Shown here piece after piece: positions 43,094 to 63,434 of a stretch of 64,000 bases of DNA. Position numbers and translations under genes: made by a program. Position 1 is the stretch's first letter. The number at the start of each line of letters is the position of its first letter. The stretch is from IMG/VR virus record IMGVR_UViG_3300003877_000001, positions 62,001 through 126,000 of that record; one strand, given 5' to 3'. Below the pieces are notes generated by a model, which was given only the letters and a program-made list of their open reading frames with translations, was not told the origin of the DNA and did not search any database.

Positions 43094-43164
43094 CACCCAT
43101 AATAGGTTACGCTCCTATGGCTCAACATTCAAAGTGTTGCGAGTTACTATTACCCCATATGGGA
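43094..43164 (-). tRNA. tRNA-Gln(UUG), atypical T loop
   Basis: CAACA-CTTTGAA-TGTTG anticodon arm; T arm ATAGG-AGCGTAA-CCTAT. Confidence 0.75.
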
Positions 43165-43172
43165 ATATTTTG

Positions 43173-43245
43173 GGTGTTCGACCAGAATCGAACAGGCATT
43201 ACTTGAATCACAATCAAGCGTGTTTACCGTTATACTACGAACACC
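43173..43245 (-). tRNA. tRNA-His(GUG)
   Basis: CTTGA-TTGTGAT-TCAAG; G-1:C73 pair. Confidence 0.9.
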
Positions 43246-43250
43246 ATTTG

Positions 43251-43323
43251 CTGACCTATCTGGAATCGAACCAGAATCTCCAAATTCAAAATTTGGCGTA
43301 ATAAACCGTTATACAATAAGTCA
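43251..43323 (-). tRNA. tRNA-Gln(UUG)
   Basis: CCAAA-TTTTGAA-TTTGG; GGTTCGATTCC. Confidence 0.92.
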
Positions 43324-43328
43324 ATATG

Positions 43329-43401
43329 GGTGTTTAATGGAAATCGAATCCATACCTTCGGGGTCACGACCCGACAATGCTACCGTTACAACATAAACAC
43401 C
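43329..43401 (-). tRNA. tRNA-His(GUG), C33 variant
   Basis: TCGGG-TCGTGAC-CCCGA; G-1:C73 pair. Confidence 0.85.
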
Positions 43402-43406
43402 ATGTG

Positions 43407-43463
43407 ATAACTTTTCATATATGAAACAAAAACAATCAATATGTTTCATATATGAAAAGTTAT
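43407..43463. repeat. perfect 22-bp inverted repeat between tRNAs
   Basis: ATAACTTTTCATATATGAAACA ... TGTTTCATATATGAAAAGTTAT. Confidence 0.9.
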
Positions 43464-43466
43464 AAG

Positions 43467-43542
43467 TCGGGTAAGAGGGAATCGAACCCCCATGATGTCT
43501 TCGTCCCAAACGAAGCGACTTACCTGATTAGTCCATTACCCG
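43467..43542 (-). tRNA. tRNA-Pro(UGG)
   Basis: CTTCG-TTTGGGA-CGAAG; C1-G72, A73. Confidence 0.92.
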
Positions 43543-43568
43543 ATATTAATAAATCAAAGAACAATAAG

Positions 43569-43644
43569 TCTAAGTGACAGGAGTTGAACCTGTAAATAAT
43601 CTCGATTCCAAGTCGAGCAACCACACCTCATGGATCGCACCTAG
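43569..43644 (-). tRNA. tRNA-Pro(UGG)
   Basis: CTCGA-CTTGGAA-TCGAG; C1-G72, A73. Confidence 0.85.
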
Positions 43645-43689
43645 ATATTTAATATTAAAATTTGTAACGTTTTACAAAAGTATGAACAT

Positions 43690-43724
43690 AAAAAAACCCT
43701 GTTCATTTTGATGTGAACAGGGTT
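43690..43724 (-). terminator. intrinsic terminator of attenuator 1
   Basis: AACCCTGTTCA-CATCAAAA-TGAACAGGGTT-TTTTT on minus strand. Confidence 0.9.
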
Positions 43725-43749
43725 CTATTAATTATTATAATTACAATAG

Positions 43750-43833
43750 TTAACTAGACATATTCTCCCCGTTCAACATCTGATGTTGATGCTGCGGTTG
43801 GGGTTGACCTACTATGTTAACTAATCTTTTCAT
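43750..43833 (-). CDS. leader peptide MKRLVNIVGQPQPQHQHQMLNGENMSS
   Basis: 27 codons with CAA CCC CAA CCG CAG CAT CAA CAT CAG run, upstream of terminator and Pro/His/Gln tRNAs. Confidence 0.88.
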   Translation of the reverse strand: MKRLVNIVGQPQPQHQHQMLNGENMSS

Positions 43834-44088
43834 TGTTCTATTTTTTAATTCAACGCAATTATAATACATATAATTTAAATAAACAAGTCATTTTGCAAAA
43901 AACTTTTACCTACCCTCAGTTATTACACTAGGGAGAAGCTATTTTCTTTTCTTTTTTAAAGACTTAACTTAAACGTTTAAGCGATAACTTCGCTTTCTTG
44001 CTAATAAATACGTAGTACTTTAGGTTTTGGTTACAAAAATTTAAAATTTATTTTTATTAAACTATAATGTATTTATAATAAAGATTTT

Positions 44089-47018: not shown

Positions 47019-47045
47019 CTAAACCTTTTTTATATTTGCAACGTA
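47019..47045 (+). promoter_or_regulatory. overlapping Bacteroidota -7 box (TATATTTG) and ECF-like AACC-N16-CGTA promoter
   Basis: CTAAACCTTTTTTATATTTGCAACGTA upstream of leader 2. Confidence 0.6.
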
Positions 47046-47089
47046 TTTAATATAGAACAAAGTATAATAACTTTAAAATAATTAAAAAG

Positions 47090-47209
47090 ATGAAGAATTC
47101 AAGAACAATTTTAAACACCAATATGGAAGCCATGTTATGGTCAGTTGCGGAAGCAGTTGAGGTGGACGATTTGTGTCTAGGGTCTTCAGGAGAAGGTGAA
47201 TTAGTTTAA
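47090..47209 (+). CDS. leader peptide MKNSRTILNTNMEAMLWSVAEAVEVDDLCLGSSGEGELV
   Basis: 39 codons; M/E/A/L/W/S/V/D control segment; terminator follows. Confidence 0.82.
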   Translation: MKNSRTILNTNMEAMLWSVAEAVEVDDLCLGSSGEGELV

Positions 47210-47234
47210 CTACTAAAACATCCAAACGAAATTG

Positions 47235-47264
47235 AAGACCCAATCCTAACAGATTGGGTTTTTT
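47235..47264 (+). terminator. intrinsic terminator of attenuator 2
   Basis: AAGACCCAATC-CTAACA-GATTGGGTTTT-TT. Confidence 0.9.
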
Positions 47265-47286
47265 GTTTTATAAGGGTTTAGAAATT

Positions 47287-47430
47287 ATGATAAGAGTTTA
47301 TATTGAAGATAAAGAAAAGGGTGTAGTATTTGCGTACATAAAAGATGTACCAGCAATTTGCAGCCAAGGTAAAACAAAAGAAGAAGTCGATAAAAAGATT
47401 GATAAGTATTTTGAAGTGATTAAAAAGTAA
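47287..47430 (+). CDS. orphan HicB-family antitoxin-like protein (47 aa)
   Basis: MIRVYIEDKEKGVVFAYIKDVPAICSQGKTKEEVDKKIDKYFEVIKK matches the HicB N-terminal pattern (P...SQG.T.EE). Confidence 0.7.
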   Translation: MIRVYIEDKEKGVVFAYIKDVPAICSQGKTKEEVDKKIDKYFEVIKK

Positions 47431-47432
47431 AT

Positions 47433-47502
47433 GGGTCTGATGCTAAAGGCAGGTCGTTGGTTTTGCATACCAAACGTTTCGGTTCGATTCCGACAGTATC
47501 CA
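47433..47502 (+). tRNA. tRNA-Ala(UGC), irregular acceptor stem
   Basis: TTGGT-TTTGCAT-ACCAA; G3.U70. Confidence 0.7.
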
Positions 47503-47637
47503 CAATAAAGTTATTTGACGTATTGTTTATTAAAAAATTATTTGTGAAGAGAGAGCAGAGACTCTTGACGGCAGCACTATAATGGTGGCTTCGAACAAAT
47601 ACATGTCGTGTGTATTGTCCGTGATAAGCAAATATAT

Positions 47638-47709
47638 GGGGAGTTAGTATAATGGCTATTATTATTGACTTGCACTCAATGGATAAGGGTTCGACTCCCT
47701 TACTCTCCA
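47638..47709 (+). tRNA. tRNA-Ala(UGC)
   Basis: ATTGA-CTTGCAC-TCAAT; G3.U70, A73. Confidence 0.93.
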
Positions 47710-47711
47710 CT

Positions 47712-47883
47712 AATGTTGAAAGGAAGCGGTTGTTTATAGACTATCGACAGCATAAGATTAGTATCGGCTTTATGTGTAATATGACGACTCTAACATGGTC
47801 TGGCTTTTCCAACATCATATATTGAAACCGTACTCGTACTGTTAGATTACACCAATATGTGAAAGAACTATAAACTCAACATT
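47712..47883 (+). ncRNA. rod-like structured RNA candidate
   Basis: Nested pairings AATGTTGA/TCAACATT, GTTTATAG/CTATAAAC, GTGTAAT/ATTACAC, TCTAACA/TGTTAGA. Confidence 0.6.
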
Positions 47884-47888
47884 TATTT

Positions 47889-47960
47889 GCTCGGTTCGTC
47901 TAACGGTTAGGACGGGTGGTTTTCAGCCATCAGATAGGGGTTCGATTCCCCTACCGAGTA
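47889..47960 (+). tRNA. tRNA-Glu(UUC)
   Basis: GGTGG-TTTTCAG-CCATC. Confidence 0.92.
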
Positions 47961-48011
47961 CTTTTGGTCGTTTTTGTACCTTTGTAATATTTATAATTAA
48001 ACATTGTAAAT

Positions 48012-48656
48012 ATGGCAAGAAAACAAAAGAAATATCATTATTTGTATAAGACAACAAATAATTTAAACGGTAAATACTATTATGGTATGCATAGTACTGA
48101 TGATTTAAATGATGGTTATTATGGTTCAGGTAAAAGATTAAGATATTCGATTAATAAATATGGTAAAGAAAATCATAGTGTTGAAGTATTAGAGTTCTTT
48201 GAAAATAGAATTGATTTAAAAAATAAAGAAAAGGAGATTATTAATTTAAATGAAATTGCCAAAAAAGATTGTATGAATTTAGTTGTTGGTGGTGGTGGTG
48301 GATTAATAGGATTATCTGAAGACAAAAGAGAAAATATTCGTAATGGTGCATCTAAATTTTTAAAAGAAAAATGGAAAGACCCTTCATATAGAAAAATGCA
48401 AATAAAACTTTCTTCGGAAAGAATAAAAAAAACACATAAAGAAGGAAAACTTAAATATAATAATTTTAAAAATAAATATCATAATGAAGAAAGTAAAAGA
48501 AAAATGAGTGAATCTAGCAAGGGAATGGGAAAAGGGAAAAGTAACTCCCAATATGGAACATGTTGGATAACAAAAAATGATGTTAATAAAAAAATTAAAT
48601 TATTTGATTTAAATGACTATATAAAAAACGATTGGATTAAAGGTCGTATAATATAA
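48012..48656 (+). CDS. GIY-YIG (Seg-like) homing endonuclease with NUMOD3
   Basis: YLYKTTN..NGKYYYGMH..DGYYGSG; HNEESKRKMSES. Confidence 0.9.
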   Translation: MARKQKKYHYLYKTTNNLNGKYYYGMHSTDDLNDGYYGSGKRLRYSINKYGKENHSVEVLEFFENRIDLKNKEKEIINLNEIAKKDCMNLVVGGGGGLIGLSEDKRENIRNGASKFLKEKWKDPSYRKMQIKLSSERIKKTHKEGKLKYNNFKNKYHNEESKRKMSESSKGMGKGKSNSQYGTCWITKNDVNKKIKLFDLNDYIKNDWIKGRII

Positions 48657-48663
48657 ATTTTGA

Positions 48664-48727
48664 TCCTTACCTTTGGTTTGGATTCTACAAAGGTTTTCAA
48701 CGTTGAACCCGTTAATCAACGTTGTTT
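48664..48727 (+). repeat. double-hairpin spacer element, copy 1
   Basis: TACCTT..GGT.TGGATT...AAAGGTTTTCAACGTTGAACC...TCAACGTTGTTT. Confidence 0.85.
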
Positions 48728-48729
48728 AT

Positions 48730-48805
48730 GATCGGTTCGTCTAATGGAACTAGGATAGGTGGGGTCAAAAGCCACCAGATAGAGGTTTAAATCCTTTACC
48801 GATTA
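48730..48805 (+). tRNA. tRNA-Glu-like paralog with aberrant 9-nt anticodon loop
   Basis: Body similar to tRNA at 47889; GGTGG-GGTCAAAAG-CCACC; T loop TTTAAAT. Confidence 0.6.
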
Positions 48806-48806
48806 C

Positions 48807-48940
48807 TATGAATTGTTAGTGGTGGAACAGGTATACACTATCACCGTTGAAGGTGGTTTGTAGGGGTTATAGAAAACCCCTGCTGCATGGTAACATGTGG
48901 GACATCCCTTGTAGGTTCGAGTCCTACCTAGTGGTTCATA
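48807..48940 (+). ncRNA. enlarged tRNA-like RNA (Ser/Leu-type D arm, two extra hairpins)
   Basis: 13-bp terminal stem, GTGGAACAGGTATACAC, GTAGG-TTCGAGT-CCTAC. Confidence 0.75.
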
Positions 48941-48946
48941 ATTTAT

Positions 48947-49019
48947 TGGGTGTTCGTCTAGTGGCAAAGGCATCTGTTTTACATGCAGAATATCGTGGGT
49001 TCGAGTCCCACACACCCAA
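48947..49019 (+). tRNA. tRNA-Val(UAC)
   Basis: TCTGT-TTTACAT-GCAGA. Confidence 0.92.
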
Positions 49020-49023
49020 CTGG

Positions 49024-49088
49024 TCTTTACCTTATGGTCTGGATTTAAAAAAGGTTTTCAACGTTGAACCAGATATCAACGTTGTTTT
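49024..49088 (+). repeat. double-hairpin spacer element, copy 2
   Basis: Near-identical to 48664-48727. Confidence 0.85.
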
Positions 49089-49092
49089 ATAT

Positions 49093-49165
49093 TCGCTCTT
49101 GGTGATCAACGGTAACATAGCAGTCTCCAAAACTGAAGATGAAAGTTCAAATCTTTCAGGGCGAG
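49093..49165 (+). tRNA. tRNA-Trp(CCA)
   Basis: GCAGT-CTCCAAA-ACTGA; G73. Confidence 0.88.
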
Positions 49166-49199
49166 CAAAGTAGTTGAAAATCAACTAGTTATAACATAA

Positions 49200-49270
49200 C
49201 GTCCATTGGTGTAATGATAACATGATCGGTTGTCTCCCGATTGCCGAGGGTTTGATTCCCTCATGGACGG
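49200..49270 (+). tRNA. tRNA-Asp(GUC)
   Basis: ATCGG-TTGTCTC-CCGAT; G73; pyrimidine at position 37. Confidence 0.8.
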
Positions 49271-49272
49271 CA

Positions 49273-49671
49273 AAATTTTGTAGTCGTTCTTGTGTTGGTA
49301 AATATAGAGCAAATAAAGTAAAAAAATCAAATAAAGTTAGACGAAGTAAAAATGAAATCTATTTTGCGGATTTATGTATAGAATATTTTAAAAATGTTGA
49401 AACTAATGAAAAAATTTTTAATGGATGGGATGCTGATGTTATTATTCACGATATTAAAATAGCAATTTTATGGAATGGTAAATGGCATTATGAAAAAATA
49501 ATCAAAAATCATTCAGTAAAACAAGTACAAAATAGGGATAGATTGAAATTAATTGAAATTAAAAATTATGGATATGAACCGTACATAATAAAAGATATGG
49601 GTTCATATAATAAAAAGTTTGTTGAAGAACAATTCAAAGAATTTATAAATGCCGATGTCGCCAAGTGGTAA
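49273..49671 (+). pseudogene. Vsr-like endonuclease, 5' end missing
   Basis: FCSRSC, SKNEI.F, WDADVII...AILWNG.WHY, RD..K; the listed start lies inside tRNA-Asp. Confidence 0.6.
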
Positions 49672-49722
49672 GGCACATTTCTCATAAGAATGTATACGAG
49701 TGTTCGATTCACTCCATCGGTA
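49651..49722 (+). tRNA. tRNA-Met(CAU) (elongator, or Ile2)
   Basis: CATTT-CTCATAA-GAATG. Confidence 0.88.
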
Positions 49723-49740
49723 CAAAATTTTTAAATAAAT

Positions 49741-49766
49741 TGTAACCTTTTAAAAAAGTTTACGTA
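49741..49766 (+). promoter_or_regulatory. ECF-sigma-like promoter TGTAACC-N15-CGTA
   Basis: Identical copy at 50223; variants at 46577, 54617, 63075 (+) and 15510, 44035 (-). Confidence 0.65.
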
Positions 49767-49776
49767 TTATAAATAT

Positions 49777-50220
49777 ATGGTTGATAAAGAAATATGTAGA
49801 TTTAAATATGAAGATATTGAATATCAAATAAGCCATTTAATATTTCAATATGGTAATATTAAAATTTCAATGCCTAGTATATTAATTACAACCAAATCTT
49901 CTAATAGTAAAAGAAGTACATATGTAAGTAAAACTGATGGACATTATAACTTAGTTGGATTGAATAACCCAATTAAATTAATTAGAAAAATTAGTAATAT
50001 TTACAATGATGAACTTAAATCTTTTGATTATGTTTGTTTTAGTGCACATACAGATGCAACAGATAAATGTACTGAAGTATATGGTGGCATTCTTAATAAA
50101 ATGGGATTTGTTAAATTATTAAATAATAAATATTATCATTTTTATAGTAGAAAAGATAAAAAACTAAAACGTAAAGAAGTTGTTAAAATTTTTAAAGATT
50201 TTGAAATTTATTTACATTAA
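49777..50220 (+). CDS. hypothetical protein
   Basis: ORF flanked by direct repeats of the promoter motif. Confidence 0.55.
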   Translation: MVDKEICRFKYEDIEYQISHLIFQYGNIKISMPSILITTKSSNSKRSTYVSKTDGHYNLVGLNNPIKLIRKISNIYNDELKSFDYVCFSAHTDATDKCTEVYGGILNKMGFVKLLNNKYYHFYSRKDKKLKRKEVVKIFKDFEIYLH

Positions 50221-50264
50221 TATGTAACCTTTTAAAAAAGTTTACGTATATTTGAAATATAAAC

Positions 50265-50336
50265 GGAGCATTGGTCTAACGGCTAGGATATATGACTATC
50301 ACTCATAGGGTAGGGGTTCGATTCCCCTATGTTCCG
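50265..50336 (+). tRNA. tRNA-Asp(AUC)
   Basis: TATGA-CTATCAC-TCATA; GGAGCAT/ATGTTCC stem, G73. Confidence 0.88.
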
Positions 50337-50346
50337 CACTGGTCAT

Positions 50347-50465
50347 TAAAGTATGGTGTAATGTGCACGATACTTCCATGTACCGACCAACGATAGCCTA
50401 TTAGTATGGTGACAATAGGTTGGCAACAGAAGTAAAGGATTAAGGTTAAATTCCTTATTACTTGA
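50347..50465 (+). ncRNA. tRNA-like RNA with extended anticodon arm
   Basis: D arm TGGTGTAATGTGCAC, TACTTC/GAAGTA enclosing about 50 nt, T arm TAAGG-TTAAATT-CCTTA. Confidence 0.55.
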
Positions 50466-50481
50466 AGACCTAAAAAAATAT

Positions 50482-50621
50482 GCTGTAATGGAATGAAGTG
50501 AAAACGATAAAGTATAATGCATTGAAATATCGTGGAAACTATTAGTCACTAGCGATAATTGGCATTAATCATTTAACATAGGGGTAATTTCCTATTATGG
50601 GTTCGAGTCCCCAATATGGCA
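50482..50621 (+). ncRNA. enlarged tRNA-like RNA
   Basis: GCTGTA/TATGGC ends; GGG-TTCGAGT-CCC T arm. Confidence 0.55.
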
Positions 50622-50706
50622 CAAAATTATGGTATGATGGAATTGGTATACATGTGGGTGTGACCTTCGAAAGAATAGGTGCAGATCAAACGGATATGTT
50701 AACAAA

Positions 50707-50808
50707 TGAAGTAAAAGGGTTAAATGATGATTTAAATGTCTTGGCTTAAAATAGTTTCAATATTTAAATATGTAGTTTATCGTTAAGGTTCAATTCCTTA
50801 TACTTCAC
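50707..50808 (+). ncRNA. enlarged tRNA-like RNA
   Basis: TGAAGTA/TACTTCA ends; TAAGG-TTCAATT-CCTTA; ATTTAAAT long arm. Confidence 0.6.
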
Positions 50809-50909
50809 AAAAGTCTGGCAGAAGTATGCGATAGGTACGACAATACCGATAGCAGAAAATGAAGGACACATTGAACTCGAAGCATTGTCGTGTGGAGATA
50901 GTAAATGTT

Positions 50910-50981
50910 TAACTAGTGGACAAGTGGTAAAGTCGCCCCTTTTAAATGGGGAGAACGTGGGTTCGAATCCTACCTAGTTAA
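50910..50981 (+). tRNA. tRNA with UAA-containing loop, short variable region (identity uncertain)
   Basis: TAACTAG/CTAGTTA; CCCC-TTTTAAAT-GGGG; GTGGG-TTCGAAT-CCTAC. Confidence 0.7.
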
Positions 50982-51209
50982 CTAAACTTCTGTGATGTGG
51001 AAGAATTGAAGTTCATGTTTGTTTAATATTTGGGTCGCTCCTGAATACTGACAATAAAGAATAGTTTATATTTGAGGTGAGTACGTATTAACCGATATAT
51101 GAAGTTACTATTTTGAATGAACGCACTTCGCACTCGTCAAAGGGAGAGAAAGCAGGTTCGATACCTGTCTACGCTACAAATATTATATCAAACGGATATA
51201 ATTTAAAAT

Positions 51210-51364
51210 TAACTAATGGCAGAGTGGCTTAATGCGGATGTCTAGTTCTATATGATTGATAGAGGGTGAACTTCTTTATCTTTTGCTCATGAACGGAAAC
51301 AATTACCCTGATTACGAGAAGCAAATATCGAAAGGGGTCATAGGTTCGAATCCTATTTAGTTAG
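51210..51364 (+). ncRNA. enlarged tRNA-like RNA with insertion in the anticodon loop
   Basis: TAACTAA/TTAGTTA; TGGCAGAGTGGCTTAATGC; GATGT/ATATC; ATAGG-TTCGAAT-CCTAT. Confidence 0.78.
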
Positions 51365-51397
51365 CAATATTATATCAAACGGATATAATGAAAATAT

Positions 51398-51616
51398 GAG
51401 GATGTGGTGGAAAGGTAAACACGCTTGTTTTAGAATAAGTACAAAGTTCATTTGGGAATAAATAATACTGATGAAGAGATGAATACCATAATGCTTACTG
51501 CTTAGTTGAACCAAGTTACCCTTCGGGATATGTCGGTAAAATAGAAATCGAAATCTAAATGATAGTAGAGGTAAGAGAGAAAGTCTGGTTTGAGGGTTCG
51601 AGTCCTTCCATCTTCA
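51398..51616 (+). ncRNA. 219-nt tRNA-Leu(UAG)-like RNA with giant variable region
   Basis: GAGGATG/CATCTTC+A; TGGTGGAAAGGTAAACAC; CTTG-TTTTAGAA-TAAG; GAGGG-TTCGAGT-CCTTC. Confidence 0.78.
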
Positions 51617-51655
51617 CTAAATTATATCAAACGGATATAATAAAAATTGAAATAT

Positions 51656-52009
51656 GGGGGTAACAGGAATTGACAGGATACGATAGGTAGACGGTGCAAG
51701 TATGAGGAAATTGCTCTACTCATTAAAAATAGGTAATGAACGTTTAAGTGGCGAAGCACTTGCAATGGCAGCATAACCGAAAGGTTTTTGTACCATTCGA
51801 GATACCACCAACTAGGTAGGTGTTCTCATAGATACTGATCACGTAAAGAGATCAAAAAATGTTGTGGAACATAAAACCAAAAAGTCTAATGTAATAAAGT
51901 GTTTGTAAATAAAAAACATAATGACTTAAAAATAATAAACAAACTAAACTTGTGAATGACTTTTTATTTGTAATATAACTGGACAGGAGTTCAAGTCTCC
52001 TTACTTCCA
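51656..52009 (+). ncRNA. ssrA: tmRNA, tag (A)GEALAMAA
   Basis: GGGGGTA..GGAATTGAC 5' end; tag ORF 51750-51776; TAAACTTGTGAA; GGAC-AGGAG-TTCAAGT-CTCCT-TACTTCC-A with G3.U70. Confidence 0.95.
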
Positions 52010-52015
52010 CAATAT

Positions 52016-52112
52016 GGTGATCTATTGGTATCTACACGCCTTTCATCGGGAAGTAGAAGGATAACTTTAATGATGAATATGAGTTATATTGGTTCGAATC
52101 CCCTGATCGCCA
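52016..52112 (+). ncRNA. non-canonical tRNA-like RNA
   Basis: GGTGATC/GATCGCC+A; GG-TTCGAAT-CC; two internal hairpins. Confidence 0.55.
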
Positions 52113-52130
52113 CTTAAATAAAAAACTAAT

Positions 52131-52544
52131 ATGGATATTGAAAAGTTTAAAAGGGATATGAAAGAAGATATGGAAAATCCTGATGGTTTCTTTGCTAGAT
52201 TGGCAAAAAAAAATGCTAATCTTGAGAAAAGATATAATAAATTTGAAAAATGGTTAGAAACAAACGAGTTTGAACCTATTTTCCAAAAATTGCTAGAAAA
52301 AAATGGTGATGAAAGAAGTACATATTGTTTTAATAAAGGACATGAAAAAAATGGTACACCTTTAATGGAATTTCTTTGTGGCTATATAACTACTAGAATT
52401 GAAACTGTTGAAAATGAAAAATTTAGTGGTGATTTTAGTTCTGGTATTTGGTTTTTTAAAGATTATTGGTTTCAATTAATTTGTGGTCAAGGATGTTTTT
52501 GGAAAATATATAATAAAGATTTTGAATGTATTGAACACGTATAG
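52131..52544 (+). CDS. hypothetical protein
   Basis: ORF track; ..GQG.F.. motif. Confidence 0.6.
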   Translation: MDIEKFKRDMKEDMENPDGFFARLAKKNANLEKRYNKFEKWLETNEFEPIFQKLLEKNGDERSTYCFNKGHEKNGTPLMEFLCGYITTRIETVENEKFSGDFSSGIWFFKDYWFQLICGQGCFWKIYNKDFECIEHV

Positions 52545-52613
52545 TGGAGCAATACTTGAAATGGTTAGAAGCCTTAAATGAAAATAGAGAATTAAGAATA
52601 AGATTAAATAAAG

Positions 52614-52811
52614 ATGTTTAATATAGGTTTTTTAATTGATAGATATTGGTGGGATATTAAACATAATAAACCACATAATTCTTTAATTGAAGGAGATACC
52701 TCTACAACAACTAACTTAGGATATTTTAAATTAGTAGATGATGAATATAAATTAACAGAGGAAGGTATTAAAAGTTATAAAAAAATGAGAAGAAATAATG
52801 AGAAAGAATAA
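52614..52811 (+). CDS. hypothetical protein
   Basis: ORF track. Confidence 0.4.
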   Translation: MFNIGFLIDRYWWDIKHNKPHNSLIEGDTSTTTNLGYFKLVDDEYKLTEEGIKSYKKMRRNNEKE

Positions 52812-52855
52812 AATACATAGTGAACGATTATCCACCACTGAAGCAGATTTAAGAT

Positions 52856-52930: not shown

Positions 52931-52981
52931 CTAATTTATTTTCGAATAGGCACACATAAAAAAATAAATCTAAAAAAGAAA

Positions 52982-53239: not shown

Positions 53240-53245
53240 TATAAA

Positions 53246-53587: not shown

Positions 53588-53588
53588 C

Positions 53589-53906: not shown

Positions 53907-54096
53907 TGAACAAAGACATTTAGTGTGTGTTCCTTATTCAAAAGAGAACCTACATTTGATGGCTGATGATTTAAACATCAAAAGATGTTGGTTTCATAAA
54001 GATCATTATGATATACCTAAAAGAAGAATAAAAGAAATAAGTGCAAAGTGCACAATAATTAATAGTAAAGAAATAGTTAAAATAATAAGAAAATGA
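53881..54096 (+). CDS. DUF4031-like protein
   Basis: HL....LH.MA..L.IKR.WF...HYDI. Confidence 0.65.
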   Translation: MLNLKYYCDEQRHLVCVPYSKENLHLMADDLNIKRCWFHKDHYDIPKRRIKEISAKCTIINSKEIVKIIRK

Positions 54097-54186
54097 ACAG
54101 AATTAACAACATATTTGAAAGTGAACAAGAGATTAATTCTGCTCTAGTGATATAGTATAACGGTCACCGAGCAGACGTAAAACTAT

Positions 54187-54261
54187 GCTCGGTTGGACAA
54201 CGGTAGGTTAAGTCACCACCCTTTCAAGGTGGTATAACGGGTTCGACCCCCGTACCGAGTA
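54187..54261 (+). tRNA. tRNA-Glu(UUC)
   Basis: CCACC-CTTTCAA-GGTGG. Confidence 0.93.
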
Positions 54262-54500
54262 CAAAAATAATAAATTTAAAGAGTCATATTGATTAGTGGG
54301 TTGGGTTTGATTTCGACTGTTACTCTGATCAGGGGTGTTATTAGCGGTTTAAAACGTGAACACATTTGTAAGTATTTGGTAGGTAAGTTCGACTCTTGCT
54401 ACTTATTAACAACACTAATTAATTTAACTTTTAAAATATGATTAGTTATCATATAAAAATATACTTAACTATTAACATATTGGTAGTTATAATGAAATAT

Positions 54501-54586
54501 TGTGAGTTGGAGAAGTTGGTATCTCGCTGGTTTCATAAGCCAGAGTCCCTACGGGGTTTACGGGGGTTCGAATCCCTCACTCGCTA
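54501..54586 (+). tRNA. initiator-like tRNA(CAU) with extra variable hairpin
   Basis: 1:72 mismatch; CTGGT-TTCATAA-GCCAG; variable CCC-TACG-GGG. Confidence 0.85.
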
Positions 54587-54817
54587 CTAAAAAGAATTAA
54601 AAATAAATAAGAAAATTGTAACATATTAAAAATATTTACGTATATTTGTAATATAACAGACAACAAAAGTTCCTATAATTTATATTTGGATAAAAAATAC
54701 TTTTCGTCTGTTTTTTTATAAATTAAAACATAAAGGTAAATGATGTTCCTATAAAACTCAATAGGGGAAACCCTATTTTTACTGTAAATACATCTCACCT
54801 TTTTAAAAAATTAAATT

Positions 54818-56572
54818 ATGAAAACTTTAGAACTATTTAATGCGGTTGTAAAAAAAGATACAAAAGATAATGTTTTTGTATCAGAAGATGGATATATTAT
54901 CGAATCTGGTGCTTTATGGGCAAAAGATAGAATTGTAACCTATTATAATAGTCGTAGATTAAATGGTAATGATTTAAATAAAACATTTCATAAATCATGG
55001 TTAAAAATAAAAAATAGTTCAAGATATGAACTATTGGTTGATCAAATAAAACATTATATATCTACATATGGTAGTGGATTTAAAGATGATGTTTATATCC
55101 CTGATGAAGTATTAGATATTTCAGGATTAAAAATATCATTTAAAGTTGTTAAAGCATATACTAAAGATGAATTAATTGATAAATCATTATCATTACTTCA
55201 ATCTGGTATTGCTTTGAAAGAAGAAACAATAAATGATTTATTATCAATTCTTGTAGATGAACTTGATTATGAATTTACTGGTAAAGAAAATATTCGTAAC
55301 AAAGAAGCAATAATTAAAATTGCAGATATATATGGGGTATTACCAATAGATACTATGGAGTTTTTTAGATATATTATCTATCGTACAACAGGACAATCAT
55401 TATTAATTAAAAATTATAAAATGATTGAATTGATAAAAGATAGTAATTATAATCCATCTGCACAATTTAAGAAATTTGGATTAGAAAAACTTTCTGAAAT
55501 ATTTAATAGATTTAAGCCGTTATTTTTAGCTTTTAAACCTAAATGTAGTGGTACTATTAATAGAATTTCAAAGTTATCTAAAAAATATCATAAGCCACTT
55601 CTTAGTAATCCATTAAATGAAGTAACTTCGGTTACATTTAATGAAGGTGATGATCACTGGTTAGATAATGCAACACCATTTGCTTTATTTAAAGCATTGT
55701 CTGCTTGTTGGACAAGAATGAATGGACAAGATGCTTTTGTATATAGAATTAGAAATGGTAAATCATTTGCTAAGATGAATTCTACTGATGCAGGTATTGC
55801 AGGATATAATTATGGACATATTCTTAATTATATTAAAAATAGATTTGATCTTTCAGGTAAGAAAATATTTCTTCCAGAAGATGTAGAATATGCTTTACCA
55901 ACATCTGAAAAGATGTACGTAGGTAATGTTCCAACAGGAACAAGATTCTATGGTAATGCTCTTGCTGTTGGTATTTATTGGAAAAACTCTTGGGGTGCAA
56001 CTGACCTTGATTTATCTGGTTTGAATATCGGTGGAAAAGTCGGTTGGAATTCAGATTATAAACAAGGTGGATCATTGTATTTCTCTGGTGATATTACCAA
56101 CGCACCTAATGGTGCTGTTGAGTATCTTTATGCAAATAGAGGACTTAGTGAACCAACTTTGGTAATGAATAATGTATTTAGTGGAAACCCTGATTCAGAA
56201 TTCAAGATCATCGTAGGTAAAGGTGATAATATCAATAAGAATTATATGATGAACCCTGAAAAGTTGTTCGTGGATATTAAGACACAATCAGTTCAAACTC
56301 AAAGTGTGTTAGGTATATTTCTTCCAGTTGGTAACGAGAGACAATCTTTTGTTATTTTGAACTTCGGTTCTGGTAGAGAACATATTTCTAGTTATGGTGA
56401 AGTTGCAAATATAACAACAAAGGCACTTTATCAACAATGGAACAATGCACTTACTTTGAGAGAAGTAATTGGAAAATTAGGTGTTGAATTTGTTACTGAT
56501 CCTGAAAAGGCAGATAATGATTTAAGTTTAAATACAATTGAAAAAGATTCTATAATGAATCTTTTTATATAA
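54818..56572 (+). CDS. stress-related protein with C-terminal TerD-like motifs
   Basis: GIYW....DLDLS...GWN....FSGDITNAP.GA.EY. Confidence 0.6.
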   Translation: MKTLELFNAVVKKDTKDNVFVSEDGYIIESGALWAKDRIVTYYNSRRLNGNDLNKTFHKSWLKIKNSSRYELLVDQIKHYISTYGSGFKDDVYIPDEVLDISGLKISFKVVKAYTKDELIDKSLSLLQSGIALKEETINDLLSILVDELDYEFTGKENIRNKEAIIKIADIYGVLPIDTMEFFRYIIYRTTGQSLLIKNYKMIELIKDSNYNPSAQFKKFGLEKLSEIFNRFKPLFLAFKPKCSGTINRISKLSKKYHKPLLSNPLNEVTSVTFNEGDDHWLDNATPFALFKALSACWTRMNGQDAFVYRIRNGKSFAKMNSTDAGIAGYNYGHILNYIKNRFDLSGKKIFLPEDVEYALPTSEKMYVGNVPTGTRFYGNALAVGIYWKNSWGATDLDLSGLNIGGKVGWNSDYKQGGSLYFSGDITNAPNGAVEYLYANRGLSEPTLVMNNVFSGNPDSEFKIIVGKGDNINKNYMMNPEKLFVDIKTQSVQTQSVLGIFLPVGNERQSFVILNFGSGREHISSYGEVANITTKALYQQWNNALTLREVIGKLGVEFVTDPEKADNDLSLNTIEKDSIMNLFI

Positions 56573-56719
56573 ATATTAAAGACGATTAGTAACACGTTGG
56601 CTTCGTGTTGAAATTGTGGGATAACGTGCCTGATAGCTGAAAAGCAAAAAGAACCACCCACTGAAAGGAAAGTTCGCAACTAAACCTGCTTTTCTAGTTT
56701 GAAACGTAAACTAGTATAT

Positions 56720-56803
56720 CGTGAGTTGGAGAAGTGGCATCTCGCTGTCCTCATAAGGTAGAGTCCCTACGGGTTTACGAAGGTTCGAGTCCTTCACTCG
56801 CTA
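56720..56803 (+). tRNA. initiator-like tRNA(CAU) with extra variable hairpin, copy 2
   Basis: C1:U72; CTGTC-CTCATAA-GGTAG; variable CCC-TACG-GG. Confidence 0.85.
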
Positions 56804-57460
56804 CTAAACTATAAGAATATGAAAAATAACATACCGCTTGGAAGCGGAATACATGTTAAATACTGTTACAGGTTCGTTGAGAACTTCACGTTTTTCTATC
56901 TCGTTAATCGAACAAGGTTAATCACCTTTTGCGGATCACGAATAGAATTTATCGGTGATTCCTCTCCCCCTTTATAGTCAAGATACTAATTATACTTGTG
57001 GATGTGCATGTATTAGAATGATATTAAATCATTTTTATGCACGATCCATTTAGAGGTGCTAAATCAAATTTCCAAATAAAGAAGTTTCTTAGAAATAATT
57101 GGAACATTAATCATAAAAAATATAATGTATCAGATAGTTATTATTCCGATTTAGTATTTGATCCAAAGATGGATAGAAAACGTTATTGGTTAGCATATAA
57201 GAAGGGGGATTAATTCTTCTTTCTTTTTAAAAATTTTTAAACTATATTTGTATTATGAGAAGTTTTGATTAAAGCAAAAAAATAATGGATAATACAATTG
57301 GAATATTTTTAATAACAAAGTTGTGAAAGTATGGTTGAAATTGATGGTTAAAAACCATTTCCAGAAGTAGATAAATTTAAATGGGTTGATTTTGATGATG
57401 CATTAGAATTAATTCATGATACACAAGTAATAGCATTAAATGAATATATAAGAAAATAAA

Positions 57461-60327: not shown

Positions 60328-60406
60328 ACACAATATTGGTACTGCGCATCAACATTATAGAGGAATTGAAAACAAATAACCTAACTATTTAAAGTAAATA
60401 AAATAA

Positions 60407-60901
60407 ATGAAAAAACATATTCTTAATGAAAGAATAAGAGGCTCTGAAATTAGATTAGTAGGACATCAAATTTATGAAAATAATATTATACCAACTGCCG
60501 AAGCATTAAATTTAGCAAATACAGAAGGGTTAGACTTGGTATTAATAAATCCAAACGAGTCACCTGCTATTTGTAAGATTATGGATTATAATAAATTCAC
60601 ATATAATCAAAAAAAGAATGAAAAGAAAAGTAGTTCTCCAAAACTAAAAGAAATAAAATTTACTCCAAATATTACTGACAATGATTTGAATGTAAAAGTA
60701 AAACAAGCTAGAAAATTTCTTGAAAAGGGAAGTGTAATTAACATACATGTATTCTTTAAAGGAAGAGAAATTGCACATAAAGATAGAGGTAAGGAAGTAT
60801 TATTTAAATTCTTAAACGAACTTATAGATATTGGTATATTTAATTTGGATATAGTCTTTAAAGGAAAAAGAATTATCCACCAAATAAGACCTAAAAGATA
60901 G
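60407..60901 (+). CDS. infC: translation initiation factor IF-3
   Basis: NE.IR..EIRLV, GLDLV.I.P...P..CKIMDY.KF, KEIKF.P.I...D, F.GRE. Confidence 0.95.
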   Translation: MKKHILNERIRGSEIRLVGHQIYENNIIPTAEALNLANTEGLDLVLINPNESPAICKIMDYNKFTYNQKKNEKKSSSPKLKEIKFTPNITDNDLNVKVKQARKFLEKGSVINIHVFFKGREIAHKDRGKEVLFKFLNELIDIGIFNLDIVFKGKRIIHQIRPKR

Positions 60902-60954
60902 TAACCATTTTATAATATTTTTAATTTGAAAGAGTATTTATAGGTGATAATGAT

Positions 60955-61590
60955 TTGAAATTAATTGAAATGGTTCAAAAATGGTTGGAATATGATGGTA
61001 AAATATATCACAAAAAAACAACACATGAATTAGCACATTCAATCACTATTACATCAAAAAATATGGTTACAAAATTAAATGAACATAATGTAACCCCAAA
61101 CAAAAGTTTTACGTATAAATATAATAACATTGCATTGTTTAATGAATTTTTACAGGGTTATGTTGAGGGTGATGGTTGTGTTGGAATATATAATAGTTCA
61201 ACAACTGACTATTATTATATTAGTTTTTTTGGTAATGAAGATTTTAAAGATAGTATTATAAATTTATTACCTACAAAACCTAAACTAAGAAAAGTTAATA
61301 ATAAATTTTATGAAATTAAATTTTTGGGTAAAATAGGAATTGAATTTAGTGATTGGTTATAGAATGACCCAATATATATTGATAGTCCTAAATATAAAAA
61401 ATATATTGACTTTAAAAAAAATTATTTAACTAAGACAAAATATTATAAATATGGTTTATTAAATAGAAAAATAGATAATTTATTAAATGAAAATGTAGAA
61501 CCAAAAATTATAGCAGAAAAACTTAATATTAATAAAAGGACTGTATATAATTATAAATATAATAAGAAAAATGGAAAAAATACTTACTAA
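60955..61590 (+). pseudogene. degenerate LAGLIDADG endonuclease
   Basis: FLQGYVEGDG; the frame continues past TAG at 61360 into an HTH-like tail. Confidence 0.6.
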
Positions 61591-62668
61591 AATAGAATGG
61601 AGTGTTATTAATGAATATATTGAAAAGGGTTTATTAATTACTAATAAACACCCAACTAAAGATATATGGGTTCTAAATTATTCTAAAACATGTGCATTTG
61701 AAAAGGAATGGGATTTAATTACATTATCTTGTCGTGGACTTTTTGTTGACATCGATGGTAATATTGTTGGTCGAAGCATGAAAAAATTCTTCAATTTAGA
61801 AGAACACGATCCTTCTGATATTCCAACTGATTTATCATTTGAAGCATTTGAAAAAATGGATGGTTCATTGGGTATTTTATTTAATTATGAAGGTGATTGG
61901 ATATTTGCTTCAAGAGGTTCATTTGAATCAGAACAAGCCATTAAAGGTGGTGAAATCATGCTTAATATTGAAAATTCTTATAGATTTTTAAATGGTGATA
62001 ATACATATGTATTTGAAATTATATATCCTGAAAATCGTATTGTTATTGATTATGGTAAGACTGAAGATTTGGTTCTTTTAGGTGTTATCAATACTGATGG
62101 TGGTGATGAAATGTCATATGATGATATGGTGTATAATCACTCTGATGAATTTACTATTGTTGAAAAGTATGATGTAACATCTGATATTTCTAAATTAAAG
62201 GAATTAGAAGAAGATAACAAAGAAGGATTTGTTGTACGTTATTCTAATGGCTTCCGTGTAAAAGTAAAATTCGATGAATATTGCAGATTACATAGAATCG
62301 TTACTAACGTATCTAATAAGACAATTTGGGAATCATTGAAAAATGGTGAAGGATTGGATGAAGTTATTGATAGAGTTCCTGATGAATTCTACAATTGGGT
62401 TAGACGTACTGAAAAGGGTTTAAATGATATGTATATTGAAATTGAAGTTGAAACATTACGTGAATTCGTTAGGGTAACTAATTTAGTTAGTTTGAAAAAT
62501 GGATTTGATCCTTTTGAAAGAAAGAAAGAATTTGCTTTAATAGCAAAAGAATTTAAACATTCTGGATTATTATTTTCTATGTATAATAATAAAAATTATT
62601 CTGAAGCAATTTGGAAAATGATTAAACCAGACTGGTCAACACCATTTAGAGATGGGTATGAAAATTAG
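61571..62668 (+). CDS. RNA ligase (T4 Rnl1-like)
   Basis: CRG, KFFN, EKMDGS, FE, EGFVV, RVKVK..Y..LH. Confidence 0.92.
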   Translation: MEKILTKIEWSVINEYIEKGLLITNKHPTKDIWVLNYSKTCAFEKEWDLITLSCRGLFVDIDGNIVGRSMKKFFNLEEHDPSDIPTDLSFEAFEKMDGSLGILFNYEGDWIFASRGSFESEQAIKGGEIMLNIENSYRFLNGDNTYVFEIIYPENRIVIDYGKTEDLVLLGVINTDGGDEMSYDDMVYNHSDEFTIVEKYDVTSDISKLKELEEDNKEGFVVRYSNGFRVKVKFDEYCRLHRIVTNVSNKTIWESLKNGEGLDEVIDRVPDEFYNWVRRTEKGLNDMYIEIEVETLREFVRVTNLVSLKNGFDPFERKKEFALIAKEFKHSGLLFSMYNNKNYSEAIWKMIKPDWSTPFRDGYEN

Positions 62669-62760
62669 TAAAAATAAAGGGGCGATAATTCGCTCCTTTT
62701 TCATTTTATAGTATTTTACATTAGATATAAAAGTATTTATATTTGTAGATAAATAAAAAA

Positions 62761-63069
62761 ATGGAACTAACAGAATACACTATATATAAACATAATAATA
62801 AAGCATATTTGAGATTTGAAAGTACTGAAAGATTTTTATGGTTCTTCAAAAAACAAGTATATAGATTTATACCAAGAAAGCATCTCTACAATAGTAAGGG
62901 AAAGAAAATCCGTAAGTGGACGATACATATGTTCCCAACTGAAATGAGTACATATTATGAGCATTTATTAGTGTGTGGGAATAAAAATGAAAGAGAAAAA
63001 TTTATTGAAAAATACCCACATATTCAACTATATTTAAACGAATTAAACACTTTTATTAAATTTTATTAA
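62761..63069 (+). CDS. hypothetical protein
   Basis: ORF track. Confidence 0.45.
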   Translation: MELTEYTIYKHNNKAYLRFESTERFLWFFKKQVYRFIPRKHLYNSKGKKIRKWTIHMFPTEMSTYYEHLLVCGNKNEREKFIEKYPHIQLYLNELNTFIKFY

Positions 63070-63204
63070 AAATTTGTAACCTTTTTCTTGCATGTTACGT
63101 ATTTATAAACGATTTTTGTAAACAATTAATGAAAAAAGATATTATAATAAGTAAAAAAGACATAACTGGTGGTAGTGTAATACCACCAAAATAAATTAGA
63201 AATC

Positions 63205-63288
63205 ATGACAAAAGTTAATACATATAAGAAATATAAAAACTATCCAGATACTGGATCAGGTATTCTATGTACTAACTTTGGTGGCTAA
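63205..63288 (+). CDS. leader peptide MTKVNTYKKYKNYPDTGSGILCTNFGG
   Basis: 27 codons; AAT ACA TAT AAG AAA TAT AAA AAC TAT run; terminator then tRNA-Tyr. Confidence 0.82.
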   Translation: MTKVNTYKKYKNYPDTGSGILCTNFGG

Positions 63289-63310
63289 AGCCATAAAGTT
63301 TAAAATATAG

Positions 63311-63344
63311 AAACCCTGATTCAGAAATGAGTCAGGGTTTTTTT
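63311..63344 (+). terminator. intrinsic terminator of attenuator 3
   Basis: AAACCCTGATTCA-GAAA-TGAGTCAGGGTTT-TTTT. Confidence 0.92.
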
Positions 63345-63353
63345 ATGCCATAT

Positions 63354-63434
63354 TGTACGGTTGAACAGGTGGTGAGTTCCGCACACTGTAAATGTGCTGC
63401 TTCGGCTATGGGGGTTCGATTCCCTTCCGTACAA
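63354..63434 (+). tRNA. tRNA-Tyr(GUA)
   Basis: GCACA-CTGTAAA-TGTGC; variable hairpin GC-TTCG-GC; A73. Confidence 0.93.

Follow-up and report, generated by a model that had tools for sequence, protein, structure and literature searches.

Each tRNA gene cluster of this giant marine phage, and of many related phages, including two cultured Cellulophaga phages, follows a tiny gene whose codons spell the amino acids of the tRNAs behind it and a switchable stop signal, which suggests that the phage makes tRNAs only when ribosomes run short of them. The window analyzed here is a 64,000-nucleotide stretch of IMG/VR virus record IMGVR_UViG_3300003877_000001 (positions 62,001 to 126,000), and positions below are those of the window. 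The sequence-only reading, which proposed that three tRNA transcription units are controlled by codon-matched leader-peptide attenuators, was confirmed as an observation and supported as an interpretation, although the functional steps are inferred from sequence alone. ARAGORN and Rfam found 20-23 tRNA genes at 43094-63435, and the three short open reading frames (ORFs) are where that reading placed them. The three units, named L1, L2, and L3 after their leaders, contain the following features.

44005..44013 (-), ACGTATTTA motif upstream of L1
43854..43887 (-), inferred promoter-like TTG..17 nt..TATAAT just upstream of the L1 leader
43750..43833 (-), L1 leader ORF, 27 codons plus stop
43780..43806 (-), L1 control run, codons 10-18, Q P Q P Q H Q H Q
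43767..43777 (-), L1 antiterminator segment, pairing with the terminator 5' arm
43690..43726 (-), L1 intrinsic terminator, 13 bp stem, 8 nt loop, T7
43661..43680 (-), invariant 20-nt inverted repeat between the L1 terminator and the first tRNA, which could be an operator, a processing site, or a second promoter
43094..43644 (-), L1 tRNA array, Pro, Pro, His, Gln, His, Gln
47031..47049 (+), L2 promoter-like TAtaTTTG (the Bacteroidota -7 box TAnnTTTG) followed by CAACGTATTTA
47090..47209 (+), L2 leader ORF, 39 codons plus stop
47123..47173 (+), L2 control run, codons 12-28, M E A M L W S V A E A V E V D D L
47180..47189 (+), L2 antiterminator segment GGGTCTTCAG, pairing with the terminator 5' arm
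47234..47269 (+), L2 intrinsic terminator, 12 bp stem, 6 nt loop, T-tract
47287..47430 (+), 47-codon ORF between the L2 terminator and the first tRNA, with no Pfam match
47433..56804 (+), L2 tRNA block, 14-16 tRNAs with anticodons for Ala, Glu, Leu, Val, Trp, Asp, and Met only, interspersed with ORFs
63097..63105 (+), ACGTATTTA motif upstream of L3
63205..63288 (+), L3 leader ORF, 27 codons plus stop
63223..63243 (+), L3 control run, codons 7-13, Y K K Y K N Y (TAT, AAG, AAA codons)
63250..63260 (+), L3 antiterminator segment ACTGGATCAGG
63309..63344 (+), L3 intrinsic terminator, 12-13 bp stem, 4 nt loop, T7, ending about 10 nt before tRNA-Tyr
63354..63435 (+), tRNA-Tyr(GUA), the first gene of the L3 unit

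All three leader ORFs start with ATG, and each is followed 20-24 nt later by a G+C-rich hairpin of 12-13 bp plus a T-tract. In a scan of the window, hairpins of 12 or more pairs with a T-tract occurred on the transcribed strand at only four places, these three and one at 18010. Within each ORF, the segment complementary to the terminator 5' arm lies just 3' of the codon run. Several points of the sequence-only reading were corrected. The L3 unit is not Tyr only but Tyr plus Lys, since it continues past the window end with tRNA-Lys(CUU), Lys(UUU), and Lys(UUU) at about window-equivalent 64164-64606 (locus L269), and these genes were found because the Lys codons of the L3 leader prompted a search beyond the window. 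The L1 array has a sixth tRNA, Gln at 43094-43164, which was found by Rfam only. Although the three leaders had been described as sharing no obvious sequence, they do share the upstream 9-mer ACGTATTTA, which has 4 copies in the window where 0.8 are expected, 3 of them upstream of the leaders, and which in L2 directly follows a TAnnTTTG box. In addition, the tRNAs at 52856-56804 have no leader of their own, no other leader or terminator lies upstream of the inner tRNAs, and these genes are either part of the L2 unit or separately transcribed.

The match between control runs and tRNAs was evaluated against random peptides drawn at the composition of this phage. The observed scores of L1 (scan statistic 10.1) and L2 (6.1) were reached by 0 of 20000 random peptides each, and of 318 real short ORFs in the window, only the leader itself reached the L1 score, and likewise for L2. 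In the L2 run, 16 of 17 residues fall in the set of the downstream tRNAs, and all 7 amino acids of that set are present. For L3, the match was weak when only Tyr was considered (504 of 20000), whereas with the set of Tyr and Lys the scan statistic was 4.3 and was reached by 2 of 5000 random peptides. Among related loci, the observed score was reached by 14 of 20000 random peptides for Cellulophaga phage phi19:1, by 2 of 20000 for locus L011, and by 0 of 2000-5000 for loci L016, L202, and L237. The match extends to the codon level. All 9 codons of the L1 run can be read by the array's anticodons UGG, GUG, and UUG, and for six-codon amino acids the run uses the box that the array's anticodon reads, with CGA matching ACG and CTT matching UAG in phi19:1, TTA/TTG matching UAA/CAA in L2, and TCC, AGT, and TCG spread over GGA, GCU, and UGA in L011. 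However, some residues in the runs have no tRNA in the visible array, namely, Ser in L2 and phi10:1, AGA in locus L013, and Arg in L237.

The same design was found in about 20 further loci. Scanning IMG/VR with the same 15-mer as at the L2 promoter-like element recovered 10 further leader-tRNA units, and leaders homologous to L2 are present in loci L185, L202, L230, L231, and L271. The sequence-only reading had proposed testing whether leader codons covary with tRNA content in related phages, and this test was positive. In a 7x7 table of nonhomologous leader types against tRNA sets, the true pairing was the single best of 5040 permutations, and every row peaked on its own set. Cellulophaga phages phi19:1 (H.QRLPQP.R, followed by Pro, Gln, His, Leu, and Arg tRNAs) and phi10:1 (WSYSCFSYSF, followed by Tyr, a Trp-like tRNA, Phe, and Cys) share one upstream region but have swapped both leader and tRNA set. 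In contrast, a T4-like Serratia phage array, a 636-kb uncultured phage, and locus L029, examined as negative controls, lack the architecture.

The leaders are conserved as reading frames. The L1 frame is conserved in loci L005, L006, L036, and L070, with synonymous changes and in-frame indels. The four substitutions read inside the L1-family run in the alignment are all synonymous, and indels are 3 nt. The ACGTATTTA motif is conserved in L005, L006, and L036, the promoter-like element of L1 forms an invariant block in a four-sequence alignment, and an exact-match scan with the 20-nt inverted repeat recovered family member L036. Of 18 related leaders, 17 start with ATG, and most begin with Met-Lys, but L185 has no canonical start codon. 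Moreover, the near-identical sister contig (L001) lacks 32 nt of the L2 leader, which frameshifts it to a 12-codon ORF, so the L2 ORF is not maintained in every genome; in our model this variant would read through constitutively.

The predicted alternative structures are consistent with attenuation. The terminator 5' arm paired with upstream RNA more than in shuffles in all 7 leaders tested (fraction reaching the observed value, 0.000-0.11), including L1, for which 0 of 200 shuffles reached the observed pairing, and a T-A to C-G change in the L005 terminator stays compatible with this pairing. Each terminator arm pairs best with its own leader, with the own-leader duplex averaging -12.9 kcal/mol against -8.6 for other leaders (0 of 20000 permutations), and the own-leader duplexes of L2 and L3 were each the best of 18. 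Hairpins with T-tracts are present in all 18 related units (stems of 6 or more pairs by the search criterion). In 18 leaders, the modeled antiterminator probability stays at 0.6-0.9 while the A site is anywhere up to the end of the run and then collapses within 1-3 codons, although the folding model is an equilibrium one with an assumed footprint (A site -15 to +12). The sequence-level predictions of the attenuation reading held, but a clear anti-antiterminator (1:2) pairing, in which the GGGG of the antiterminator segment can alternatively pair with the CCCC of the control codons, was seen only in L1 (window L1 and L006; antiterminator probability without a ribosome, 0.05-0.3). L2 and L3, like most relatives, lack a clear pairing of this kind (0.5-0.86), and L2 and L3 are predicted to read through if untranslated.

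These elements are best explained, with good though not complete confidence, as ribosome-mediated (leader-peptide) transcription attenuators that control tRNA operons. In the proposed sequence of events, transcription starts upstream of the short ORF, which would be translated as it is made. If charged tRNA for any codon of the run is scarce, the ribosome would stall inside the run, leaving the segment just 3' of it free to pair with the terminator's 5' arm as that arm emerges, so that the terminator cannot form and RNA polymerase reads into the tRNA genes. If decoding is fast, the ribosome would run onto or past that segment, which in many relatives is the last codons plus the stop, and the terminator hairpin would form and stop transcription before the tRNAs. 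Because the product is the very molecule being sensed, this would be direct negative feedback on decoding capacity, and leaders naming several amino acids would act as OR gates for a whole array.

An alternative, which is unlikely, is that the leader, terminator, and antiterminator are real but the tRNAs are made mainly from their own promoters downstream of the terminator, with the short ORF and terminator being a separate small transcription unit or only a minor modulator. The L1 family has an invariant 48-nt spacer with a TTTG-containing inverted repeat, and many relatives have a conserved TTGACA-containing motif, GTTCTTTGACATGTTGG, between the T-tract and the first tRNA, either of which could belong to an independent promoter or a processing signal, and the inner tRNAs of the 9-kb L2 block are far from the leader. 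However, only 5-14 nt separate the T-tract from the tRNA 5' end in L3, phi19:1, phi10:1, L237, and locus L174, which leaves no room for a promoter in between, and the TTGACA-like motif lies about 21 nt from the tRNA start and, as read by eye, has no -10 element at 17 nt. This alternative also does not explain why leader codons track tRNA identity. It is more doubtful that the leaders sense decoding but act through Rho-dependent termination, transcript cleavage or stability, or a protein or tRNA binding the leader RNA in the manner of a T-box. The Bacteroidota hosts, indicated by TAnnTTTG boxes and the Cellulophaga phages, are poorly studied for attenuation, and L2 and L3 lack a clear 1:2 pairing, but canonical hairpin plus T-tract terminators are present in every unit, each leader carries a segment matched to its own terminator arm, and there is no T-box or other Rfam match, even at relaxed thresholds. 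That the short ORFs encode functional small peptides resembling the neighboring tRNAs by chance or local composition bias is very unlikely, because although L2-family peptides are hydrophobic and helix-like and L3 with Tyr alone was not significant, seven unrelated peptide types with very different chemistry (Gln/Pro/His, Ser/Arg/Trp, Tyr/Lys, aromatic/Cys, Thr/Ser/Ile/Phe, and others) each match their own array, and the codon-box matching also argues against chance.

The closest known systems are the amino-acid biosynthesis leader-peptide attenuators of enterobacteria (trpL, hisL, leuL, thrL, ilvL, and pheL), with which these elements share a short leader ORF, a run of regulatory codons, an antiterminator overlapping the terminator's 5' arm, and an intrinsic terminator, and in L1 even the 1:2 pairing. 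Leaders naming several amino acids may have a precedent in thrL (Thr, Ile) and ilvL (Leu, Val, Ile). In contrast to these systems, the regulated genes here are tRNA genes, with a few small ORFs, rather than biosynthetic enzymes, up to 7-8 amino acids are named in one leader, the elements are in phage genomes of Bacteroidota hosts, and there is no sequence or Rfam similarity. Transport and synthetase genes, the other targets of the described attenuators known to us, are not the regulated genes either. The pheM leader of the pheST (phenylalanyl-tRNA synthetase) operon probably also controls a component of the translation apparatus that supplies charged tRNA, but it controls a synthetase and names one amino acid. 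The Escherichia coli tRNA-Phe genes pheU and pheV have only a promoter directly upstream and no leader ORF or terminator. T-box riboswitches likewise couple codon-specific sensing of tRNA status to a terminator/antiterminator choice upstream of translation-related genes, but a T-box binds uncharged tRNA directly through a specifier codon and a conserved T-box sequence, without translation, and no T-box hit was found here at the Rfam gathering threshold or at E<=1. Published work known to us on phage tRNA arrays, as compensation for codon usage or as replacements for host tRNAs cleaved by defense nucleases (PrrC, PARIS, retron- or VapC-type), concerns what the tRNAs do and not demand-dependent control of their transcription, and our full-text literature searches found no paper describing a leader-peptide attenuator upstream of phage or cellular tRNA genes.

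It is possible, though only tentatively proposed, that these phages divide their tRNA genes into a few operons, each gated by a multi-amino-acid leader, with examples across different phages being Pro/His/Gln, Ala/Glu/Leu/Val/Trp/Asp/Met, Tyr/Lys, Thr/Ser/Cys/Ile/Phe/Gly/Asn, and Ser/Arg/Trp/Cys, and that the leaders together form a codon-resolved sensor of the infected cell's decoding capacity. The main selective purpose may then be counter-defense, in which removal of particular tRNAs by a host anticodon nuclease or tRNA-depleting system would stall the matching leader and switch on replacement tRNAs. Compared with plain demand or starvation, such a trigger has only circumstantial support, which comes from an RNA-repair gene set beside the arrays in the window, with a T4 RnlA-family ligase, Tpt1/KptA, a phosphoesterase, and a cyclic-phosphate-processing domain.

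The window is part of a 325,854-bp IMG/VR contig, IMGVR_UViG_3300003877_000001, and its G+C content is 23-33%. Its few DNA matches to cultured phages are to phages of marine Flavobacteriia, namely, Tenacibaculum phage PTm1 and Cellulophaga phage phi19:1. PTm1 was the best DNA hit but has no tRNAs in the matched 40 kb. A total of 20 tRNA genes between 43172 and 63435 were identified with ARAGORN, Rfam added a tRNA with a Gln anticodon at 43094-43164, and a relaxed ARAGORN run added weak Ala-like and Glu-like copies. The three tRNA units were confirmed to be as the sequence-only reading had described them, each with a short open reading frame (ORF), an intrinsic terminator, and tRNA genes:

L1, minus strand: leader ORF at 43833-43750 (27 codons); control run at codons 10-18, Q P Q P Q H Q H Q; terminator, a 13-bp hairpin plus T7 at 43726-43690; followed by tRNAs for Pro, Pro, His, Gln, His, and Gln.
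L2, plus strand: leader ORF at 47090-47209 (39 codons); control run at codons 12-28, M E A M L W S V A E A V E V D D L; terminator at 47234-47269; followed by a 47-codon ORF and then 14-16 tRNAs up to 56804.
L3, plus strand: leader ORF at 63205-63288 (27 codons); control run at codons 7-13, Y K K Y K N Y; terminator at 63309-63344; followed by tRNA-Tyr about 10 nt downstream.

In a terminator scan, hairpins of 12 or more pairs with a T-tract occur on the transcribed strand at these three sites and at only one other place in the 64 kb, at 18010. The anticodons in the L2 block stand for Ala, Glu, Leu, Val, Trp, Asp, and Met, and for nothing else, although the charging identity of several unusual tRNAs is uncertain. 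Two tRNAs (54501-54587 and 56720-56804) have a long variable arm (class II) but the anticodon CAU, one tRNA-Asp (50265-50337) has the anticodon AUC, two (50910-50982 and 52856-52931) have the short class I shape with the Leu anticodon UAA, and one (48730-48806) is a Glu-like paralogue with an enlarged anticodon loop that reads as Leu(CAA).

Each leader was scored with a scan statistic, the best binomial window for residues belonging to the downstream tRNA set, and compared with random peptides drawn from the amino acid frequencies of this phage. The L1 score of 10.1 was reached by 0 of 20000 random peptides and, of 318 real short ORFs in the window, only by the leader itself. The L2 score of 6.1 was likewise reached by 0 of 20000 random peptides and by 1 of 318 real short ORFs. 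However, L3 scored against Tyr alone gave only a weak match, with the score being reached by 504 of 20000 random peptides and 32 of 318 real short ORFs. Since the L3 run is as rich in Lys as in Tyr, the contig was examined past the window end, and tRNA-Lys(CUU), tRNA-Lys(UUU), and tRNA-Lys(UUU) were found after one ORF, whereas tRNAs for Asn and Thr, which had also been anticipated, were not found. With the set {Tyr, Lys}, L3 scores 4.3, which was reached by 2 of 5000 random peptides, and its run uses both AAG and AAA.

The FtsH-like gene next to L1 led to two homologous loci, L005 and L006, and exact-match scans found two more, L036 and L070. A scan with the exact 20-mer from the L1 spacer returned L036 together with 4 unrelated metagenome hits, and of 119 loci retrieved from IMG/VR with a back-translated QPQPQHQ pattern, all were chance or protein-coding matches except L070. 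All four loci keep a leader of the form MK..(V/I)NI..QPQPQHQ.., followed by a terminator and by Pro and Gln tRNAs, with His tRNAs following as well except in L070. The four substitutions read inside the run in the alignment are all synonymous (CAA/CAG and CCC/CCT), and the length differences are multiples of 3 nt. Where the L005 terminator has a T-A pair changed to C-G, the leader segment opposite it carries a G and can pair with either version. In contrast, a search for diverged L3 homologues through the RNA ligase yielded only contigs without tRNAs (L037-L039), the 129-amino-acid ORF upstream of L2 has no homologues, and the small protein next to the Ser array recovered no additional contigs.

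Independent leader types were found in other phages. Distant jumbo-phage relatives, with 38-42% identity in the FtsH-like protein, carry a different array near that gene, consisting of Ser, Cys, Arg, and Trp, behind a different leader. Of these loci, L011 has ..RWSRWSSSSNR.., L013 has ..WSSRWSRS.., and the G+C-rich L016 has ..SSRSSSWSWSRS.. with a scan score of 11.6. The cultured 57-kb Cellulophaga phage phi19:1 has H I Q R L P Q P K R, followed by tRNA-Pro and then Gln, His, Leu(UAG), and Arg(ACG). Cellulophaga phage phi10:1 shares the region upstream of the start codon with phi19:1, but its leader reads W S Y S C F S Y S F, and the tRNAs behind it are Tyr, a subthreshold tRNA-like sequence with anticodon CCA (Trp, 25 bits), Phe, and tRNA-Cys. 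This comparison is the cleanest form of the covariation test, with the same site but a different leader and different tRNAs. Some of these tRNAs are missing from the GenBank records, namely, tRNA-Pro(UGG) in phi19:1 (KC821607; locus L004, 3001-3075) and tRNA-Cys(GCA) plus the weak Trp-like tRNA in phi10:1 (KC821618; locus L040, 2042-2112 and 1798-1868).

In addition, IMG/VR was scanned with the 15-mer TTTGCAACGTATTTA, taken from just upstream of L2. Of the 11 loci with same-strand tRNAs within 2.5 kb downstream, 10 have a leader, a terminator, and an array. Some are L2 homologues, including L202, in which 22 of 30 leader residues lie in {Asp, Glu, Val, Leu, Ala, Trp}, which is exactly its 14-tRNA array, as well as L185, which has no canonical start codon, L230, and L231. 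Others are a new type, including L237, in which 34 of 42 residues lie in {Thr, Cys, Ile, Ser, Phe, Gly, Met, Asn}, its 10-tRNA array, as well as L174, L236, and L259. As negative controls, a T4-like Serratia phage array, a 636-kb uncultured phage, and locus L029 show nothing comparable. One strict scan of bacterial genomes for the L2-family pattern found a single hit (L271; JBAZIW010000001.1), a 362,763-bp scaffold labelled as a Candidatus Paceibacterota metagenome bin, with 34% G+C in the 8 kb examined. It carries an L2-type leader followed by a 16-tRNA array and is probably a jumbo phage genome binned as a bacterium.

One representative of each of seven nonhomologous leader types was scored against every tRNA set. 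Each leader peaks on its own set, and the true pairing is the single best of all 5040 permutations. At the codon level, the runs use the codon box that the array can read. In phi19:1, CGA goes with anticodon ACG and CTT with UAG, rather than the AGA and TTA that would presumably predominate in AT-rich genomes. In L2, TTA and TTG go with UAA and CAA, and in L011, TCC, AGT, and TCG go with GGA, GCU, and UGA, and AGA with UCU. There are a few exceptions, namely, AGA in L013 and AGT/AGC in L016, and some residues in the runs (Ser in L2 and phi10:1 and Arg in L237) have no tRNA in the visible array.

The full-length leader RNAs fold with the terminator in the minimum-energy structure. When the transcript is cut before the 3' arm of the terminator, the 5' arm pairs with a segment inside the ORF, just 3' of the run. 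This pairing exceeds shuffled controls in all seven leaders tested, with the fraction of shuffles reaching the observed value being 0.000-0.11. A ribosome was modelled as covering A site -15 to +12, and only the RNA 3' of it was allowed to fold. In 18 leaders, the modelled probability of the antiterminator stays at 0.6-0.9 while the A site is anywhere up to the end of the control run and collapses within 1-3 codons after that. Each terminator 5' arm was also compared for duplex stability with its own leader and with the other 17, giving a mean of -12.9 against -8.6 kcal/mol (0 of 20000 permutations), and the own leader ranks first for 9 of the 18 terminators and in the top three for 14. In the L2-type and Thr/Ser-type relatives, the antiterminator is literally the last codons plus the stop codon (..GTCGGGTAA), which repeat the 3' arm of the terminator, so a ribosome that reaches the stop must cover it. 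Window L1 also has the classical 1:2 pairing, in which the CCCC of the control codons pairs with the GGGG of the antiterminator, and the model predicts termination when the leader is untranslated. L2 and L3 lack this pairing and are predicted to read through if untranslated.

The comparative and structural evidence at many independent loci supports classical ribosome-mediated attenuation with a new target as the best reading, although each functional step is inferred from sequence rather than demonstrated experimentally. In this reading, a ribosome stalled in the run leaves the antiterminator free, and RNA polymerase continues into the tRNA genes, whereas a ribosome that decodes the run quickly covers the antiterminator, and the terminator forms. 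The genes controlled encode the molecules whose shortage causes the stall, so this is direct negative feedback, and leaders naming several amino acids act as OR gates. The L2 leader ORF is not always kept, since the near-identical sister contig L001 (IMGVR_UViG_3300003876_000001) has a 32-nt deletion in the L2 leader (L001 16510-16550, equivalent to window 47110-47141) that frameshifts it to a 12-codon ORF and removes or de-frames the run. The same contig also lacks one tRNA-His of the L1 array, and the deletion may be a derepressed natural variant. tRNA genes are usually described as being controlled at the promoter, by growth rate and the stringent response. A codon-specific, translation-coupled feedback on tRNA transcription would be a new regulatory logic and would explain how phages with dozens of tRNAs avoid making them when they are not needed. 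The leaders are also a readable record of which codons a phage considers limiting in its host, which bears on whether phages carry tRNAs for codon usage compensation or to replace tRNAs destroyed by defense systems. More speculatively, the simple three-segment form (run, last codons plus stop acting as the antiterminator, and terminator) might serve as a compact, programmable sensor of codon-specific translation stress.

The device would work like the trp, his, leu, thr, ilv, and phe attenuators and like the pheM leader of pheST, and it fulfils their structural criteria, apart from the 1:2 pairing that L2, L3, and most relatives lack. It differs from them in the class of gene controlled, in the number of amino acids named, and in being phage-borne. 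It is not a T-box, and it matches no Rfam family at the gathering threshold. At E<=1, there is nothing in the L1-L2 stretch and only weak subthreshold hits over L3. The pheU and pheV tRNA-Phe loci of Escherichia coli MG1655 have only a promoter, with no leader ORF and no terminator. No description of a leader-peptide attenuator upstream of tRNA genes in phages or in cells was found by full-text literature searches, although most subscription journals were outside their reach and an older description cannot be fully excluded.

Additional promoters or processing signals between the terminators and the tRNAs cannot be excluded. In the L1 family, an invariant spacer contains a 20-nt inverted repeat, CTTTTGTAAAACGTTACAAA (window 43661-43680, minus strand), between the terminator and the first tRNA-Pro, which is invariant in all five L1-family sequences aligned or inspected. 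Many related units, including L202, L231, L240, L259, L236, and L271, have a conserved motif, GTTCTTTGACATGTTGG, located 15-30 nt upstream of the first tRNA, which contains TTGACA but has no -10 element at the right spacing. However, in L3, phi19:1, phi10:1, L237, and L174, the T-tract ends 5-14 nt before the first tRNA, and readthrough is therefore the only obvious way to transcribe those tRNAs. A sigma-70 promoter scan was uninformative in this AT-rich DNA, with 150 sites found against 141 expected. The motif ACGTATTTA occurs 4 times in the window where 0.8 are expected (44005-44013, 47041-47049, 63097-63105, and 15481-15489 [minus strand]), with three copies upstream of the tRNA leaders and one before an ordinary gene. 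In L2 and in many IMG/VR loci, it directly follows a Bacteroidota-type TAnnTTTG box, so it probably marks a transcription start region. A stretch of about 130 nt between this motif and the L1 promoter-like element (window 43880-44013, minus strand) has two hairpins and a T-run, is conserved in L005, L006, and L036, and could be a small RNA or a long 5' leader.

The arrays lie in a translation and RNA repair neighborhood, which contains the following genes in window coordinates:

40521-42614: FtsH-like AAA+/M41 protease.
45478-45900: cyclic-phosphate-processing receiver domain.
57461-58105: calcineurin-like phosphoesterase.
58448-58945: Tpt1/KptA RNA 2'-phosphotransferase.
60407-60898: phage IF3 homologue.
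61571-62665: T4 RnlA-family RNA ligase.

This neighborhood fits a phage that faces tRNA damage, but it is only circumstantial support for the proposal of the sequence-only reading that host anticodon nucleases may be the trigger. In distantly related phage contigs, suppressor-type tRNAs with amber or ochre anticodons occur, with anticodon CTA in L009-L012, L016, and L026-L028 and anticodon TTA in L214 and L230, which hints at stop codon reassignment in those phages.
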